Shown: piece by piece, positions 5,605 to 14,406 of the stretch
Numbering within the stretch: position 1 is the stretch's first letter
Layout of the letters: each line of letters begins with the position of its first letter
From: Guillardia theta CCMP2712
Taxonomy: Eukaryota; Protista; Cryptophyta
DNA length: 39,178 nucleotides
Direction of reading: 5' to 3'
Assembly: GCF_000315625.1 (NCBI RefSeq)
Contig: NW_005434671.1
Span: 776,878-816,055, forward strand
Program-made: the position numbers and the translations under genes
The notes under the pieces: generated by a model
Told to the model about the DNA's origin: nothing
What the model saw: the letters and a program-made list of their open reading frames with translations, nothing else
Database searches by the model: none

Positions 5605-6654
5605 TCACTGTACAGGCACACACTGTTGACCCTGCCTAGTATATCCCTCGTCGCAGACACACTGTTCGGAGTGCTTGCTCTCTGGTGCAGAGCTGGAGTG
5701 AGCTGGACAGCTGACGCACACAGAGAACGTATCGTCTGCCCAAGTGTTGATCGGGCAGGGAGTGCAGGATCGTTGGAAGCGCATGCCGCCAGAGTCGGGT
5801 ACATACTTATCTGTCCTGACAAACCCTGCAATGCAGCGACAATCGAAAGGACTGGTGCTGTTCGCTTGCGACCTTGCATTAGCGTCGCAGGCTGTACATG
5901 TCGATGTATGCCCTTCCTCTGAGTAGGTGTTGGATTGACAAGTGCTGCAATCGTTGTCGACGCTCGCCCCACCTGCACAGCCGTTGTTGCTTGTCTTGCC
6001 GGCTGGACATACAGTGCATCCTTGACAAGCAGTTTGCCCATCGGTGGAATATGTTCCTGTTGGACAATCTTCACAGCGAGCCATCTCCAAGCTACTTCTG
6101 TATTTTCCTGCTGGGCAGAGAGTGCAATTCACGCCTTCTGAATTGTATTGGAATCCCGTATTGCACGCAAACGTGCAGTCATTAGAGTCAAGGCCTCCAG
6201 GTGCGTGATATACACTGTTTTCGGGTATTTGATTGCTGCAAGGAGAACAAAATGTATCTGTGGAAGCATTGCAGGAATGAGGATAAAATCCAATTATGCA
6301 AGAGCTTATGTCTTCGTGTGGAGTACATGGTTTGCAGTTATCATTTCCCAACCAATCCTTGAAGTAGCCATGCGAGCAAGCGGTGCACTGACTGTAAGAA
6401 GGTCCTCCCGCAGATCCCTCATAACCAACATTGCACAAGCACGTAGATGAGCCTGGCATTGACCATTCGCCAACATAGCAATCCAGACAGGGAAAAGGAT
6501 CAGGGACTTCAGTCGACTCTTGCCATTTATATTTGCCAGCAGGACAAAGTGCGCATGACAAGTCAGGTGAAGAGAACATGCCAGGACGGCATGCAGTTGA
6601 CGCCATCGCCTCCAGCATCACCAGCATCAACGCCATCTTTGCTTGACTCGCCAT
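5605..6654 (-). CDS. Secreted cysteine-rich repeat protein (GCC2/GCC3, ephrin-receptor-like and TNFR-like repeats), 349 aa
   Basis: Signal-peptide-like start MASQAKMALMLVMLEAMASTA, then repeats CALCPAGKYK, CTACSHGYFK, CTLCPAGKYR, CEDCPTGTYS, CTPCPINTW, CVSCPAHS and CxCxxGY/F motifs; no TM segment; intronless. Confidence 0.85.
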   Translation of the reverse strand: MASQAKMALMLVMLEAMASTACRPGMFSSPDLSCALCPAGKYKWQESTEVPDPFPCLDCYVGEWSMPGSSTCLCNVGYEGSAGGPSYSQCTACSHGYFKDWLGNDNCKPCTPHEDISSCIIGFYPHSCNASTDTFCSPCSNQIPENSVYHAPGGLDSNDCTFACNTGFQYNSEGVNCTLCPAGKYRSSLEMARCEDCPTGTYSTDGQTACQGCTVCPAGKTSNNGCAGGASVDNDCSTCQSNTYSEEGHTSTCTACDANARSQANSTSPFDCRCIAGFVRTDKYVPDSGGMRFQRSCTPCPINTWADDTFSVCVSCPAHSSSAPESKHSEQCVCDEGYTRQGQQCVPVQ

Positions 6655-6769
6655 GTCAAACGACGTGGGAGACTGGAGCTCTCGCCGCCCACCACCCCCC
6701 GAACAGTGCTTCTGACTACCCCTCCTCTTGACCCTTCTCCCCTCCTTGCACTTGACTAGGCCCATCAAC

Positions 6770-6979: not shown

Positions 6980-9900
6980 ATGGCGGGGCGGGTGACATTG
7001 TTGGTGGTGGCCGTGATGGTGGCGATGGCGGGAGAGGCAGAGGGCAAGGCGGGAGACTTAGTAAGAAGCTCCGACTTCAGGCGAGAAGGGTGGACCATGT
7101 CCGGAGACAACGGAGGGGGAGGGATGGAGGTAGATACGCGGCAAAACCTTGTCCGTGCGAGCGATGATGGAGATAGAAGCTGGTACTTTGAAACGCCGCG
7201 GGGATGGCTGGAGGGAGACAAGGCAATCATTTACAATGGGACCCTGGAGGTCTTCCTGCAAACCATTTCGTGGACAGGCAGCTACAAGGAGGATTATGAC
7301 GTGGTGCTTGTGGCCAGTCGGAAGAGTCTGTCCTTAGGGTTGAAAGGCATGAAAAAGGACGGTGAAACATCAAAGAATTACATTGTGCAGCTAAACGAGA
7401 AGTCGGGATGGATGTTTTACAGGAAAGGTAGATCAAGTAAGGTCGTGCCCAACGTCACTGCACAAGACTTTATCTTCTGCCTGAACAACCTGGTGGGAAT
7501 ACAGATCCGAGGCGGTTACTACGCTGGCTCAGAACAAGCACAGCTGAGATCGTTGAAAGTAACGCAGGGGTACATGGCAGGTGATGAGAACAGTAAACCA
7601 GACATCATGTCATCTCTTTGGCTGGGCTCTCGGACCTGTGAAAGTTCTGAGAGATTCGAGATTACGTTCAACAATCCTGGGCTGCCTTGCCATAAGTGGG
7701 AAGAAATTACCAGCGGAGTGCTACAAGCCGTGGACTCTTCTTCTCCGTACCAAGTCTTCAAGCTCGATCCTCTCTCCTCCTCAAATCGCCAGGATTATTA
7801 CGTCGGCCGAAGTTTGAATATCACGGGCGGGCCCGGTCATGGGCATTCAGGCACAGTTGTGCACTACGTGGGAAAGTTGGACTGGGAGGTCAGCAGCGGG
7901 GTGACGAGCGTAGAGATCGTCAATCCTGGTGAAGGCTGCCAGACGCGGGGATACTTGTCAGCCTACGGTGGTGGTGGGAGCGGATTCGAGGCTTCCTTTG
8001 ATGTAAGTTGTGTCTCTCTGCACTACGTTGTGCGCCGAACTGACCTTGTTGTCGTGAAGGTGTTGTACAGCATTCCCGAGGTTGAGATATTCAATGGAGG
8101 CATCGGTTGCTCTGGAACGCTACAGAACTTTGGGTTGGAGATAAGACAGGGTCAGATAACTAACGTGACGGTCATGAACTCTGGAGGTACAGCTTACATC
8201 ACAGGAAGTGCCATCGCCGTCTGTGAGCCTCCGTGTACTGGCAGCGGATTCGCTGGGACTTGCTATGCAAGCGGTGGCAACGTCTATCAAGTCGTGATCC
8301 AGCAGGGTGGGAACGCGTACAGCGCAGGGCATCCGCCAGTCTTGAAGTGTCCGGAGGGCAGGTTGACAGCGGTGGGGTCTGAAGGAGGCTACGGTTTCGA
8401 GGCATTCATCGGGACTACCTCTGGAGCGATCACTCACGTGCTCGTCAAAGACGGAGGGTCGGGGTACAGCGGGAGCATCTCCCTGGTCCCCGAGGTCTAC
8501 ACAACGTGCGTCAGCTTCGACCTGCGGCCGGTGCCGTCCGGCCACATGAGCTCGGTCTCGGTGATCAAGAGCGGCAGCGGATACTCGAGCCTGCCTCGGA
8601 TCACCATCAGTCTGGGTGGCGGAGCTGAGACCGGGGCTGGCTGTCGGAATTTCGACCTCAGGGCCCACGTGGGGGACCACACTGCTGGGATCCTGTCGAG
8701 GGTGAGCGCGAAGTCGTTGGTGTTGGGTATGTGGGCAAGCGAAGTGGACGGATACTACGAAGGTGAGGCACTTGCTGGAATTCTCGCGCGATCCTGACGA
8801 GAGTCTGACACTTGCTTCCCCTCGTTGCAGGCATGACGATCGTGATCACGAGTGGAAACGCCAAGGGGTTGATAGCGAGCATCCTGCAGTACACAGCAGC
8901 GACGAAGGAGGTGGTCCTTGCCAGCTCGCTGTCAACTCTCCCAGCTATAGGAGATACATACGGGATCACGCCTACTCCACTGCACGTCATGAAGAATGAC
9001 GCGTTGGGGATCGACCTTGGCAGGTCTCTCGGAGGACAAGTGGCTTCAGCGCTGTCTTGCAGCTGCCCTGCCAGCTCTCAAACTCACTCCAGCAACTTCA
9101 TCTGCTCAAACTCTTCCTCGTGTGCGCGGGGATTGTGTGTCTGCTCCGTGACTTTGGATTCAACGGCCCCTGCACAGGATGAAATCCTCACAGGGGAGAC
9201 GATTTACTTCACAAGCGCCTCCTTTGCGAACTCTGGAAAGGTGTGACGATGAGGAAGACAGTGGGCTTGAGTAGTGTTTGGTGTGACTTGGCTTGCAGTC
9301 TGCTCAGATCGTCGCTTATGATGGAGCTAACCGACGTGCAACTCTTGCTGTGTCAGGGTCTGCACATCAAGACTTCCGCAACCAACTCGGTGAGCGGTCG
9401 CGTCGGAGACGCAGCGGCAGGATGACGGCATGATGCAGGAAATACCGACGAGATTGCAGCAGGAGCATCATACCTCACTTCCTACACCCACGTGGCCAAA
9501 GTAGCAAATGGCAACTTCAACCTTCTCCAGGCGGGAAAGAGGTTGCATGCTGGGAGGTTAGTTTCTACGAGGACACTCATTGTACTTGTTTTCAGCACTT
9601 ACTCGATCATGATGGACGATCAGTCGGCTCGGGTGGATGCGGCGCTGGCAGGTGCGTCACACAGATGTCCTGGGTCGATCGTGATATGGATTCGGCAGGG
9701 AGGAACTACTTCTGCGACCAGCTTGTCGGCGACAACCCCCCTGCTCCATGGATCCGGCTGCCGTTCGAGAAGACATTCTCGTTCCGCTCGGTACCGCACA
9801 TATCCAGGTAGCCGCATTCTGCTTTGCATCAGGCCGCCGCGGTTCTCATCAGACCGCCTTGCAGCGTCGCCACGTTGACGATAGCAGCGGAGGGACGGGG

Positions 9901-11332
9901 CTTTGACGACCTACTGTGGAAGGGGAACAACCTGACTCTGATGGGACCCAACGTGACCTGCCGTCTCCTCCTGGTCTGTTCCTCTCACCCTCTTGCTGCA
10001 GAACGAGTTCTTGGGGACTGTGTTTGAGGACGGGGAGTTCGAGAAGAATGCGCAGAGGGGAGGGCCGATCTCGGACAGCATCACCATCTCCCAGGAGAAG
10101 ATGCTGGAGATGACGGCAGACCGCGAGTTCAACTTCAAGCTCAAAAGCCAGCCGGTGAGCCTTCCTCGATCCTGCTAAAGATTCAGTTGCTGACTGCGAA
10201 GCTTCAAGGGGAGGGATGGGGAGATCCGCTTCCGCTACATGAAGCTTTCCTTCGCCCCCTCCACATTCTTCTCCTCCAAGTTCGCTACCGACGAGTTCTT
10301 CTACAGTGAGGCAGACACCACCGTCGCCCAGTATAAGGAGCTCAACGTAACGTTCCAGCTGCCTCAGAAGGCCCAGCAGGCGCCCACGAGCGACGGGGTC
10401 TTGTCCCTCATCGTAGATGGCTACCTGGAGGAAGGCTTCCTAACCCTCTCCTACAACAATACGGTGAAGAAGCTCTTCGACGGGTGGGTGTGGGGGCAGG
10501 GGGTGAGGAGGTACGCCCTTTCGGAGCCTGCAGACATCGGTGTCCAGTGCGACAACTCCAACTTCTGCAGCCCCAACTCCTTCGTGGACGTCAGGCAGAC
10601 CCGCTCGCCCCGCCACACAACAGCAGTGCGCATCGACCGACAGGACCTGCTGAGCATGTCCAGCGACCGCCAGGCGAATTTCATCTTCCGCGTGCTCAAC
10701 ACTCCTCGGGCGAAGCTCAGCCCGGTCATGCTCTCCTACTCTCTTCTCAGCTGCTACCTGCGCACCCTCACGGCCAGGGACGGTCAGATCTTCGGGGCCC
10801 GTCTCAGTCGCCCCTCCCAGTCTCTCATCGAGTTCCCAGGAGCCTTCCCAGCTGCGGCAGCAGACGGCTTCCTGTGGCTCCATGCAGAGATCCAGTACCA
10901 TGTGCAGCACGTGCGGGATACGCAGGGGCTGCCGGATCAAGCTCCGAGGGTCCTCAGAACCTCGACGGGAGCGTTCTACGAGGAAGCGCTCAACGACGTG
11001 AGGGACCCCCGAGGAGACTTGCCGGCAGAGGCCCACAACCTTCCCTTCCTCTCCGCCATCAGCGTGCATGCCGGTAAGAGAGGCATAAGGGGCGGGGGGA
11101 GGAGGAGGAGCTGACGGGCCTGGCAGGGGACATGGGGGAGAAGATTGGCCTCCTCTTCAACGATGACTACGCCCAGTACGACTCCAGCAAGGGCTTCGTG
11201 GACAACGTGCGGGTCCCCAAGAGGATCCTGGACCAGCTAATGCAGTCAAAGTCGCTCTCCTTCACCCTGGTGGTTCCGCCAGGCATAGGAGGCGTGCGAG
11301 TATTCACGGCAGTGATTGCGTATGCGATATGA
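6980..11332 (+). CDS. Large secreted protein: signal peptide, laminin IV/B-like domain, Gly-rich beta repeats (GSGY-type), C-terminal repeated domain (multi-exon)
   Basis: MAGRVTLLVVAVMVAMAGEAEG signal. Laminin IV/B-like segment FRREGWT..WYFETPRGWLEGDKAIIYNGTL..DVVL..YIVQLNEKSGW..TAQDFIFCLNNLVGIQIRGGY. GT-AG introns (e.g. 8763-8830, 9241-9298) join the ORFs; last exon ends TGA 11332. Some internal junctions were not resolved. Confidence 0.8.
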
Positions 11333-12997: not shown

Positions 12998-14406
12998 TCA
13001 GTCTCCTCGCTCCCTCCGCATCCAGTCCATGATGAGTGAGTGCGCTACGGCTGCTCGTCCGGGGATGCTCAACTTGTGTGCGGAAAGCCCGCTCTCGATG
13101 TCCTCCCGCGAGAACCATTTCACTGACACGAAGATTCAAATGTGAGAGCTGGGGAGGGCGAGAGTGGGAGGAGGAGGAGGAGGAGGAGGAGGAGGAGGAG
13201 GGTGGGGGGGGATTGGGGTGGTGGTCGTGTTCGTGGTGGTGGTGGTGGTGGTGGTGGAGGAGGAGGAGGAGGACTCACCGTCGTCCATCTCGTTCTCGTC
13301 GACGTCGATCGCTGGAAGTTTCCCGTCCGCAACCTCCATGGCCCTCGCAGTGAAAGCGATCATGAGCGATCGCTGCCGGCATGTCAGCAAGGGACAGGCC
13401 ACGTCACCACAAGCGGCTCTACCGGGAACGGCCAACTCTGACTGGAGAAGAAGCGGATCGACTGAGGGTCGACCCTCACGCCCGACTCTTCCCACACCTC
13501 TCGCACCACCGTTTCCTCAAGGCTCTCCCCTACCTCGGTGAAGCCTGCCAGCACGCTGTACCTCCCTGTTGGCCAGACTGCCTTCCTCCCGAGCAGCGCA
13601 TGCTTGCCACAGGAGCTGCTTACCAGGACGATGACTGAGGGATCGATCCGAGGGTAGAACCCGCTCTTGCACTCCGAGCATCGACGCATGCTTCCAGCCT
13701 TGTCTGGTCGAACTTTTCCGCTGCCACAGTTCGAGCAGAAGGAGACGCTTCGATGCCAAACTGAGAGGCCGCGGGCTGTGGCTAACAAGCCAGCATCCTC
13801 GTCTCTCTCAAGAAGGCCCCCAGCTGTTCTCAGCTGCTCGAAGTAGCTACCTTCGGGTGCCGCGATGCCCTCCGGCTCCAGGGTGCTCACGTCCAAGGCG
13901 AAGTAGCGGATGTTCTCCAGATCGCCAATGTACATCTTGACAACATCATCGTTCATGGCGAGAGACTTCACGTCCCCGAAGTTCAAGAAGACGGGCTCAA
14001 AGAAGTCTTCGATCTCACTTTGCTTCCTGAAGAGGTTCTTTCCTCTCCAGACGAGGATAAAGCGTGAATTCGGCTCCATCATGGAGTTTCTGAAGCTCTC
14101 TTCGTCAGACAATCTCTCACGAGATTCTCTCTGAAGAGAGGGGCACGAATAGTAATTCGGCCACACTGGCTGTGCCGAGGGCGCATGGCTGAGTTTCCTT
14201 GCAGTGGGTTCGAATGTGGAACGCTTCTCGCGGTAATCTTCGAAATTGTAGCCTGCATCTTTCATCGACATCTGACGGATAGATGGCATGCTATCACGTG
14301 TCATCACTCTAAACGCCGGCGAGTAGATAGAAAACGATAGTGCCTGCTGTAGCCAACCCACCGCCAGCGCATGCCCATACAGAGTTCCAAGAATCCGCTT
14401 GGACAT
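12998..14406 (-). CDS. nudC: NADH pyrophosphatase, NudC/NUDT12-13-type Nudix hydrolase, probably plastid-targeted
   Basis: Zn ribbon FCSNCG..RCSEC..FYPRIDP; Nudix box GFTEVGESLEETVVREVWEESGV; SQSWPFP signature. Spliced tail RSLMIAFTA..IDVDENEMDD/VKWFSREDI..SIPGRAAVAHSLIMDW..TGA at 12998-13000. Confidence 0.92.
13165..13272. repeat. (GGA)n/(GGT)n trinucleotide tracts in the last Nudix intron
   Basis: Directly visible. Confidence 0.85.

Follow-up and report, generated by a model that had tools for sequence, protein, structure and literature searches.

The question raised by a plus-strand gene in a 39,178-nucleotide stretch of the Guillardia theta CCMP2712 genome (contig NW_005434671.1, positions 776,878 to 816,055) is how repeats resembling phage tail and baseplate proteins came to lie in a eukaryotic gene alongside a laminin IV domain. 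All coordinates below refer to this stretch, which is termed the window. A sequence-only reading of the window had proposed that a structural module derived from a phage or bacterium was domesticated and fused to the laminin IV domain. The gene (6980..11332) was found to encode a 1273-amino-acid (aa) protein in which two repeat types, designated A and B, follow the laminin IV domain (Pfam Laminin_B). Both have homologues in phage and bacterial proteins, a relationship that is strong for A and more sporadic for B. We consider it probable that the product is a secreted, soluble, all-beta modular cryptophyte protein, that its repeats came from the bacterial and phage gene pool, and that it serves as an extracellular stalk, matrix or adhesive protein.

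Repeat units and their relatives

Downstream of Laminin_B, the blocks of the protein are arranged in the order B1, A1 to A6, B2, a Cys-rich linker, and B3. An A unit is approximately 32 to 49 aa long and comprises three strands, with the succession ItxVxV, a GxGY turn, PxVxI, a Gly-rich loop, and GFxAxF. A B unit is approximately 59 aa long and has the consensus DxYYxG-IxItsGxGxGQ-xIxxYxGxTkxAtV-W..P..tS.Y.I. No model for either repeat was found in Pfam or NCBIfam, and both families are uncatalogued in these databases. The sequence-only reading had counted three B copies, which stands, and had listed five A copies, a number that rises to six; what it took for "GGGGSGFEA" spacers between the A copies belongs to the A unit itself, of which it forms the Gly-rich loop and the third strand, as in phage units, in which this loop and strand read 'GGGGSGATATA'.

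Two external hidden Markov models (HMMs) were built, one from 81 A units of phage and bacterial proteins only and the other from 11 B units of three unrelated proteins only (P0022, P0085, and P0112). The external B HMM matched exactly the three B sites of the 1273-aa protein. B1 (residues 266-298; 7775..7873, plus strand), with the sequence SSSNRQDYYVGRSLNITGGPGHGHSGTVVHYVG, corresponds to the N-terminal half of a B-type unit, matching HMM positions 4-36 of 59 with an expect value (E) of 1.8e-10. B2 (residues 567-622; 8735..8970, plus strand, split by the intron at 8763-8830) is a complete unit, matching positions 5-59 of 59 (E = 3e-10); weak KOW-like Pfam matches were also obtained at this site (E = 0.005 and 0.077). 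B3 (residues 684-728; 9154..9346, plus strand, split by the intron at 9241-9298) is diverged and matches positions 1-43 (E = 4e-4), with equivalent matches present in the homologues P0009, P0011, P0158, P0160, and P0161.

All six A units likewise lie on the plus strand. A1 (residues 306-341; 7895..8002), matched by the external A HMM with an E of 1.3e-4, is followed by the A2-A6 array, consisting of A2 (residues 342-373; 8060-8155), A3 (residues 374-415; 8156-8281), A4 (residues 416-464; 8282-8428), A5 (residues 465-503; 8429-8545), and A6 (residues 504-545; 8546-8671). Within the array, external A HMM matches were found for A3 (weak, E = 0.12), A5 (E = 1.7e-3), and A6 (E = 7.5e-8). A3 is a Cys variant with the pattern C..PC.G.G..G.C, which is invariant in the A3 unit of the family and recurs in many short environmental matches. 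No DNA-level repetition was found across the repeat region, which suggests that the A and B units are old duplicates.

Relatives of the A units were identified by several routes. Within residues 390-554, matches were obtained to phrog_460 (E = 5e-7) and to the virion structural PHROGs 19630, 701, and 6005 (E = 3e-5 to 7e-4), and baseplate wedge and tail-fibre PHROGs gave weak matches to the repeat block. When 50,697 phage genomes were searched with tblastn, S-RIM8-type T4-like Synechococcus phages alone matched (E = 7e-4, 30% identity). This alignment spans residues 58-189 of the exon beginning at 8060 and falls in a 6396-aa 'virion structural protein' (YP_007518170.1) encoded directly after baseplate wedge genes. 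When a family profile was run exhaustively with HMMER, with bias correction, against 1.84 billion representatives, only 130 proteins reached E<=1e-3. Approximately the first ten matches belong to the same family, with Laminin_B followed by repeats, and multi-repeat giants rank next. Phage proteins matched with database-wide E values of 3.8e-21 to 1e-6, including P0015 (3120 aa, E = 3.8e-21), the gene of which lies shortly after a tape-measure gene and tail genes, and the 'baseplate wedge initiator' of cyanophage S-RIM50 (YP_009302175.1, 6405 aa, E = 4.9e-7). In a further match, P0019 (E = 9.6e-14), the Pfam domain Baseplate_wedge is accompanied by 14 regular A units, and 19 PHROGs of tail, baseplate or virion proteins are matched. 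Cellular bacterial proteins were also recovered; P0033, from the bacterial metagenome-assembled genome (MAG) GCA_964514385.1, is lipoprotein-like, and its gene adjoins those for an extracytoplasmic function (ECF) sigma factor and an outer membrane protein (OMP) beta-barrel. Together with the structure predictions described below, these matches support homology of the A units to repeats of T4-like cyanophage structural proteins, the resemblance that the sequence-only reading had pointed to.

The B units have a different distribution. Near-perfect tandem B copies were found in P0022 (six) and P0085 (three), and P0022 lies amid integrase, holin, and M23 peptidase genes, which is a prophage-like setting. 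In Microcystis phage Mae-JY22, a protein encoded two genes past the tape measure (XAI95665.1) gave B matches with E values of 1e-8 to 2e-10. Weak matches were found in a baseplate protein of the jumbo Ochrobactrum phage vB_OspM_OC (E = 8e-4) and in the baseplate wedge of the T4-like Caulobacter phage Cr30 (E = 5e-3). B units are rare among sequenced phages, and searches of these with the B unit found none in T4-like cyanophages. The B consensus given for phages in the sequence-only reading recurs almost literally in the tandem units of P0022 and P0085, and its assignment to phage tail or baseplate proteins was borne out, but its attribution to T4-like cyanophages was not.

Among the matches at E<=1e-3, all named eukaryotic carriers of A units are Guillardia or Hanusia. 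The closest named relative is the transcript-derived Hanusia phi protein P0001, which shares 84% identity over the whole 594-aa query. In Guillardia theta, A units also occur in EKX55501.1 (4588 aa, with six PA14 domains, FG-GAP, and Filamin), EKX51703.1 (PA14 and Filamin), and EKX38598.1 (IPT/TIG), which argues against the single fusion event of a module to laminin IV that had been envisaged. In addition, an environmental TIG family (P0047/P0163, approximately 1630 aa, locus L010 7682-12736) carries a B unit as well as A units, and its locus adjoins spermine synthase and ankyrin genes on a eukaryote-type contig. The Laminin_B family is thus not the only one to combine A and B, although in this data set the two co-occur only in eukaryote-type proteins. 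Protein searches with a word filter, started from a full-length homologue or from the family alignment, returned at least 8000 candidates and added only metagenomic family members. A literature search found no paper describing the A or B repeats or the 1273-aa protein, and the only related work concerned the fibres of polinton-like viruses (PLVs).

Since the phage and bacterial carriers are many and diverse and the named eukaryotic ones are confined to Guillardia and Hanusia, acquisition from the prokaryotic or phage pool is the more likely history. Most probably, the cryptophyte lineage obtained the A and B units long ago from this pool, the low similarity to every prokaryotic unit suggesting that any acquisition event was old. 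The units would then have been re-used through domain shuffling in several secreted adhesin-like proteins, with some A copies becoming stabilized by cysteines. Domestication of a phage module, as originally proposed, is plausible, but cellular bacterial proteins possess A units no less than phage proteins do.

Alternatively, the repeat could be an ancient and widespread extracellular beta repeat that lacks a Pfam model, being vertically inherited or eukaryote-derived in cryptophytes and held independently by phages and bacteria or taken by them from eukaryotes. In favour of this explanation, A units occur in cellular bacteria, in phages, and in eukaryotes, and they are found in several unrelated cryptophyte architectures; the cryptophyte units are also very diverged from all prokaryotic ones, as a strict phage-only HMM finds 0 to 2 units per family member. 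However, only the 130 of 1.84 billion representatives reached E<=1e-3, the named eukaryotes among them were all Guillardia or Hanusia, the phage and bacterial carriers are many and diverse with 10 to 40 units each, and 35 viral structure matches were obtained (see below). We therefore regard this alternative as unlikely.

Predicted fold of the repeat block

Single-sequence AlphaFold prediction gave a predicted local distance difference test score (pLDDT) of 37. AlphaFold2 was also run on residues 255-577 of P0001, the numbering of which is that of the 1273-aa protein, supplied with 148 aligned rows drawn from family members and repeat segments, and yielded a model with a pLDDT of 85 and a predicted TM-score (pTM) of 0.66. 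This model is all-beta with 18 strands, and the pLDDT of A2-A6 is mostly >90. In A1, strands were predicted at residues 305-318, at residues 324-329, and from residue 337 on. Several strands of 12 to 17 residues cross unit boundaries, and the repeat block is thus predicted to form one elongated beta rod and not a chain of separate beads.

A Foldseek search of the viral BFVD database returned 35 matches at E<=1e-3 with probabilities of up to 1.00. Almost all came from uncultured Caudovirales or from myophages of Synechococcus or Prochlorococcus. They are annotated as subunits or initiators of the baseplate wedge, as baseplate hub plus lysozyme, or as neck, structural or tail-fibre-like proteins. 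A shape search of the ESM Atlas was led by Uroviricota clusters, including Baseplate_wedge and Phage_sheath (TM-score of 0.37 for Phage_sheath). As both sides of these comparisons are predictions and the BFVD TM-scores are low, they provide support rather than proof that the A units share a local fold with phage units.

The profile and structure comparison that the sequence-only reading had called for came out on the phage side for PHROGs and viral models, without a convincing counterpart in the PDB. Foldseek with the repeat-block model found no PDB match at E<=1e-3, a second search gave Z-scores of at most 2.6, and a search of the PDB by sequence found nothing for the repeat block. A sequence match of P0019 to the OAA lectin (E = 0.035) and the PDB matches of P0022 were taken as chance or noise. 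The surface-exposed domain I of the T4 sheath protein gp18 offers a lead on the origin of the A-unit fold that is too weak for a claim.

The resemblance to phage proteins might instead be compositional, reflecting sequence rich in G, S, and T, or convergent, and thus not due to homology. The scores of single A units are modest (4 to 20 bits), the TM-scores are low, and matches in the PDB are weak, all of which would be expected on these grounds. However, none of 2000 composition-preserving shuffles of residues 260-735 reached the real scores, which were 61.3 bits for B against a shuffled maximum of 7.4 and 20.1 bits for A against 14.0. Database-wide E values extended to 3.8e-21 with bias correction in place, the B motif was matched column by column over 55 columns, and the best BFVD matches had a Foldseek probability of 1.00. 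The conserved GxGY and Pro positions of the A units also recur in register. A compositional or convergent resemblance is very improbable.

Gene structure, protein architecture and cellular setting

The gene structure was established by homology, from GT/AG sites and from tblastn alignments of three environmental homologues of full length, namely P0009 (1294 aa), P0011 (1300 aa), and P0007 (1464 aa). The model consists of a single plus-strand gene with 11 exons, located at 6980-8002, 8060-8762, 8831-9240, 9299-9389, 9439-9556, 9596-9651, 9699-9807, 9865-9952, 10002-10154, 10209-11073, and 11127-11332 (stop included). These are separated by ten GT-AG introns of 39 to 68 nucleotides (nt) at 8003-8059, 8763-8830, 9241-9298, 9390-9438, 9557-9595, 9652-9698, 9808-9864, 9953-10001, 10155-10208, and 11074-11126. 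The spliced coding sequence is 3822 nt with a single terminal stop, and its 1273-aa product aligns collinearly with P0009 and P0011 over the whole length, signal peptide and C terminus included. All peptides listed in the sequence-only reading lie on this one plus-strand reading path, and it was correct in describing the gene as eukaryotic and interrupted by introns, and the product as having a signal peptide and a laminin IV domain.

The raw long open reading frame (ORF) at 6980-8797 starts with a hydrophobic, signal-like N terminus and contains the Laminin_B domain. Reading through positions 8003-8059 adds 19 spurious residues, as intron 1 (57 nt, GTAAGT...GAAG) is in frame and free of stops. 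It was exposed by the transcript-derived P0001 from Hanusia phi, which lacks these 19 residues and reads SFDVLYSIPEV at this point. For the shortest intron (39 nt, 9557-9595), homology is the sole support.

The predicted signal peptide, MAGRVTLLVVAVMVAMAGEAEG, comprises residues 1-22 (6980..7045, plus strand), and its cleavage is surmised from the sequence. Equivalent N termini followed by a conserved GD[LV] occur in the homologues. Because this is the only hydrophobic segment, the product is predicted to be soluble and secreted. The residue after the likely cleavage site is nonaromatic, which, by comparison with cryptophyte bipartite signals, would be compatible with a destination other than the plastid. 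Laminin_B (PF00052) spans residues 71-197 (7190..7570, plus strand) and was identified with an E of 6.1e-8 and a score of 33.1 bits against a cut-off of 22.4, covering profile positions 3-123 of 136. P0004 also contains this domain, and precomputed annotations list it for P0001-P0003, P0007, and P0158-P0160. The Cys-rich linker between B2 and B3 (residues 650-682; 9052..9150, plus strand), read from the translation, has seven Cys residues, and such a stretch is present in P0009 and absent from P0011.

The remainder of the protein is a conserved C-terminal region of approximately 470 aa (residues 800-1273; 9648..11329, plus strand; exons 6-11) that shares 32 to 49% identity with P0009, P0011, and P0007. 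No Pfam, PHROG, PDB-sequence or Atlas match to this region was found. In Pfam scans of every exon translation, only Laminin_B was identified, bar the weak KOW-like matches. The phage baseplate wedge domain (Pfam Baseplate_wedge PF23786, T4 gp7-like) was not matched in the 1273-aa protein; P0019 matches it at 1.3e-12. In P0007, P0158, P0159, P0160, and P0162, a second block of A units lies within the conserved C-terminal region (for example, at residues 1137-1321 of P0160); this block is missing from the 1273-aa protein, P0009, and P0011.

The neighbouring genes are eukaryotic and include a Sec1 family gene, a NUDIX/NADH pyrophosphatase gene, and a Cys-rich Ephrin_rec_like gene. The Cys-rich ORF of the last of these, which lies in divergent orientation at 5605-6768 on the minus strand, contains Ephrin_rec_like and TNFR-like repeats (E = 6e-10), and its product is likely secreted or located at the surface. 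Just upstream of the NUDIX gene, positions 13036-13541 contain low-complexity DNA in which overlapping ORFs on both strands consist of homopolymer runs (poly-E, -G, -W, -R, -T, and -P). Environmental homologues occur on eukaryote-type contigs with differing cellular neighbours, which include an SBNO helicase gene in one case and a choline transporter gene with PDZ and PH genes in another. One member of the 90%-identity cluster of P0002 is labelled 'laminin B domain-containing protein [Promethearchaeia archaeon]' (MGB1594974.1). The other copies in the cluster lie on eukaryote-type contigs (L007 and L008), and the archaeal label probably reflects algal DNA, of eukaryotic origin, that was sorted into the MAG of an Asgard archaeon. 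That the gene is cellular, being neither contamination nor part of a viral element, is indicated by its ten introns and cellular neighbours, by the expression of its Hanusia orthologue, and by the location of homologues on eukaryote-type contigs; it is most likely a nuclear cryptophyte gene, that of Guillardia theta itself.

Cryptophyte PLVs carry phage-like fibre proteins with Laminin_G_3, collagen, adenovirus-fibre, and Peptidase_S74 modules (PMC12220804). The many PLVs of cryptophytes and their fibres combining phage-type modules, together with the tail and baseplate type of the repeats described here, would be compatible with a gene for a viral fibre within an integrated element, such as a PLV or a giant-virus insert. 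However, the gene has ten spliceosomal introns and a secretory signal peptide, its nearest neighbours, which were scanned, are the Sec1, NUDIX, and Cys-rich receptor-like genes, and no Laminin_G_3, Peptidase_S74, collagen or adenovirus-fibre domain was found in Pfam scans of the exon translations. With the same architecture also present in Hanusia and on environmental eukaryotic contigs with differing cellular neighbours, a viral origin of the locus is hardly credible. Contamination of the assembly with bacterial or phage DNA, for which the repeat types typical of these sources might speak, is ruled out by the gene structure, in which the protein arises only after splicing of ten GT-AG introns, and is countered further by the eukaryotic flanking genes and the expressed Hanusia phi orthologue.

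A number of points weigh against acquisition of the repeats from bacteria or phages and against an extracellular role for the product. The external A HMM matches only four of the six A units (three at E<0.01 and A3 at 0.12), and the match to B3 is weak (E = 4e-4). The TM-scores of the BFVD matches are 0.14 to 0.33, which is expected for long rods, and the match is local. The best PDB superposition, to domain I of T4 gp18 (3fo8_D residues 99-187), has a Z-score of 6.3 and a root mean square deviation of 2.8 Å over 74 residues, which is below a trustworthy level, as Z-scores of <8 are common between unrelated pairs. Splicing was modelled by homology; the one raw RNA run labelled as this species gave 0 reads at approximately 6% sampling, and the contigs from other RNA runs were short, low-depth, unspliced or DNA, and hence uninformative for splicing and expression. 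Acquisition is the more likely history for the set of carriers found here, and a transfer, whether from a phage or a bacterium, is plausible. The searches made brought up no demonstrated binding or structural role of A or B repeats in any organism, and the extracellular placement of the cryptophyte protein is a prediction.

Acquisition of the repeats from the bacterial and phage pool nevertheless remains the preferred reading. The repeat rod may space and present Laminin_B and the C-terminal part, or may itself bind surface glycans. The most likely role, that of an extracellular stalk, matrix or adhesive protein, is suggested by the secretion signal, by the company of A units in G. theta (PA14, FG-GAP, TIG, and Filamin), and by the annotation of the phage relatives as tail, baseplate, and neck proteins; the periplast, extrusome or prey-adhesin roles proposed from the sequence alone are speculation. 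More tentatively, both repeat families may have been captured early to form a lineage-specific cell-surface toolkit together with Laminin_B, PA14, FG-GAP, TIG, and Filamin, possibly acting in the periplast or in the binding of bacteria. We consider this wider proposal possible but doubtful; if true, it would represent a rare re-use of virion tail-decoration modules as parts of a eukaryotic extracellular matrix.

This analysis defines two widespread repeat families that lack both a solved structure and an entry in Pfam or NCBIfam. The baseplates of marine T4-like cyanophages and the surface proteins of bacteria are rich in A units, and B units occur in phage tail-tip proteins. Both are built into a conserved family of secreted cryptophyte proteins and into adhesin-like giants of Guillardia. 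The result is a new domain architecture drawn from two uncatalogued families; the phenomenon of prokaryote- or phage-type modules in eukaryotic secreted proteins is already known, and no new mechanism is involved. Were the origin from prokaryotes to cryptophytes true, the family would be a clear-cut case in which surface modules of phages or bacteria became extracellular proteins of a eukaryote. It also offers a way into the protein make-up of the cryptophyte cell surface, about which almost nothing is known, and a tractable eukaryotic homologue could help to reveal the role of the repeats on phage baseplates.

Comparison with known systems

The giant structural proteins of S-RIM8 and S-RIM50, together with PHROGs 701, 19630, 460, 708, 2885, and 5342, which are related families of the baseplate wedge and hub, the neck, and the tail fibre, share with the cryptophyte protein tandem A units of approximately 40 aa (ItxVxV-GxGY-PxVxI-GGGGxGAxAxA). 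The cyanophage giants have an N-terminal Baseplate_wedge domain followed by 10 to 40 regular, Cys-free units, and they lack a signal peptide, introns, Laminin_B, and detectable B units. In contrast, the cryptophyte A units are irregular (32 to 49 aa), partly Cys-stabilized, and only six in number. The bacterial lipoprotein-like surface proteins (approximately 1000 aa, such as P0033) carry 8 to 14 tandem A units behind an N-terminal signal, as is the case here, but are encoded by prokaryotic cellular genes, have regular Cys-free units, and possess none of the other domains of the cryptophyte protein.

The B unit of phage and prophage tail-tip or fibre proteins is approximately 59 aa long, with the consensus aSxvDDYYnGxxIxItSGtGaGQxRtIxdYvGaTkvAtV..W...Pd.tSxY.I, and cryptophyte B2 aligns with 55 of its 59 positions. 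Phage B units are tandem and highly regular and follow tail genes, whereas those of the cryptophyte protein are three diverged and dispersed copies, one of them truncated, interleaved with A units.

Although the N-terminal domain passes the Pfam threshold for domain IV of laminin and perlecan, the cryptophyte protein has no laminin EGF repeats, LN or LG domains, or coiled coil; it does not belong with the metazoan basement-membrane proteins, to which its architecture is unrelated. Closer at hand, the G. theta giants and P0047/P0163, which stem from the same organism or lineage, are large, are presumably extracellular, and carry A units, and P0047 also has a B unit, but their partner domains differ, and none combines the repeats with Laminin_B or with the C-terminal region of the Laminin_B family. 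The fibres of cryptophyte PLVs likewise represent phage-type fibre modules in cryptophyte genomes (PMC12220804), but these lie in viral elements and consist of other modules, whereas the Laminin_B gene is cellular and intron-rich.

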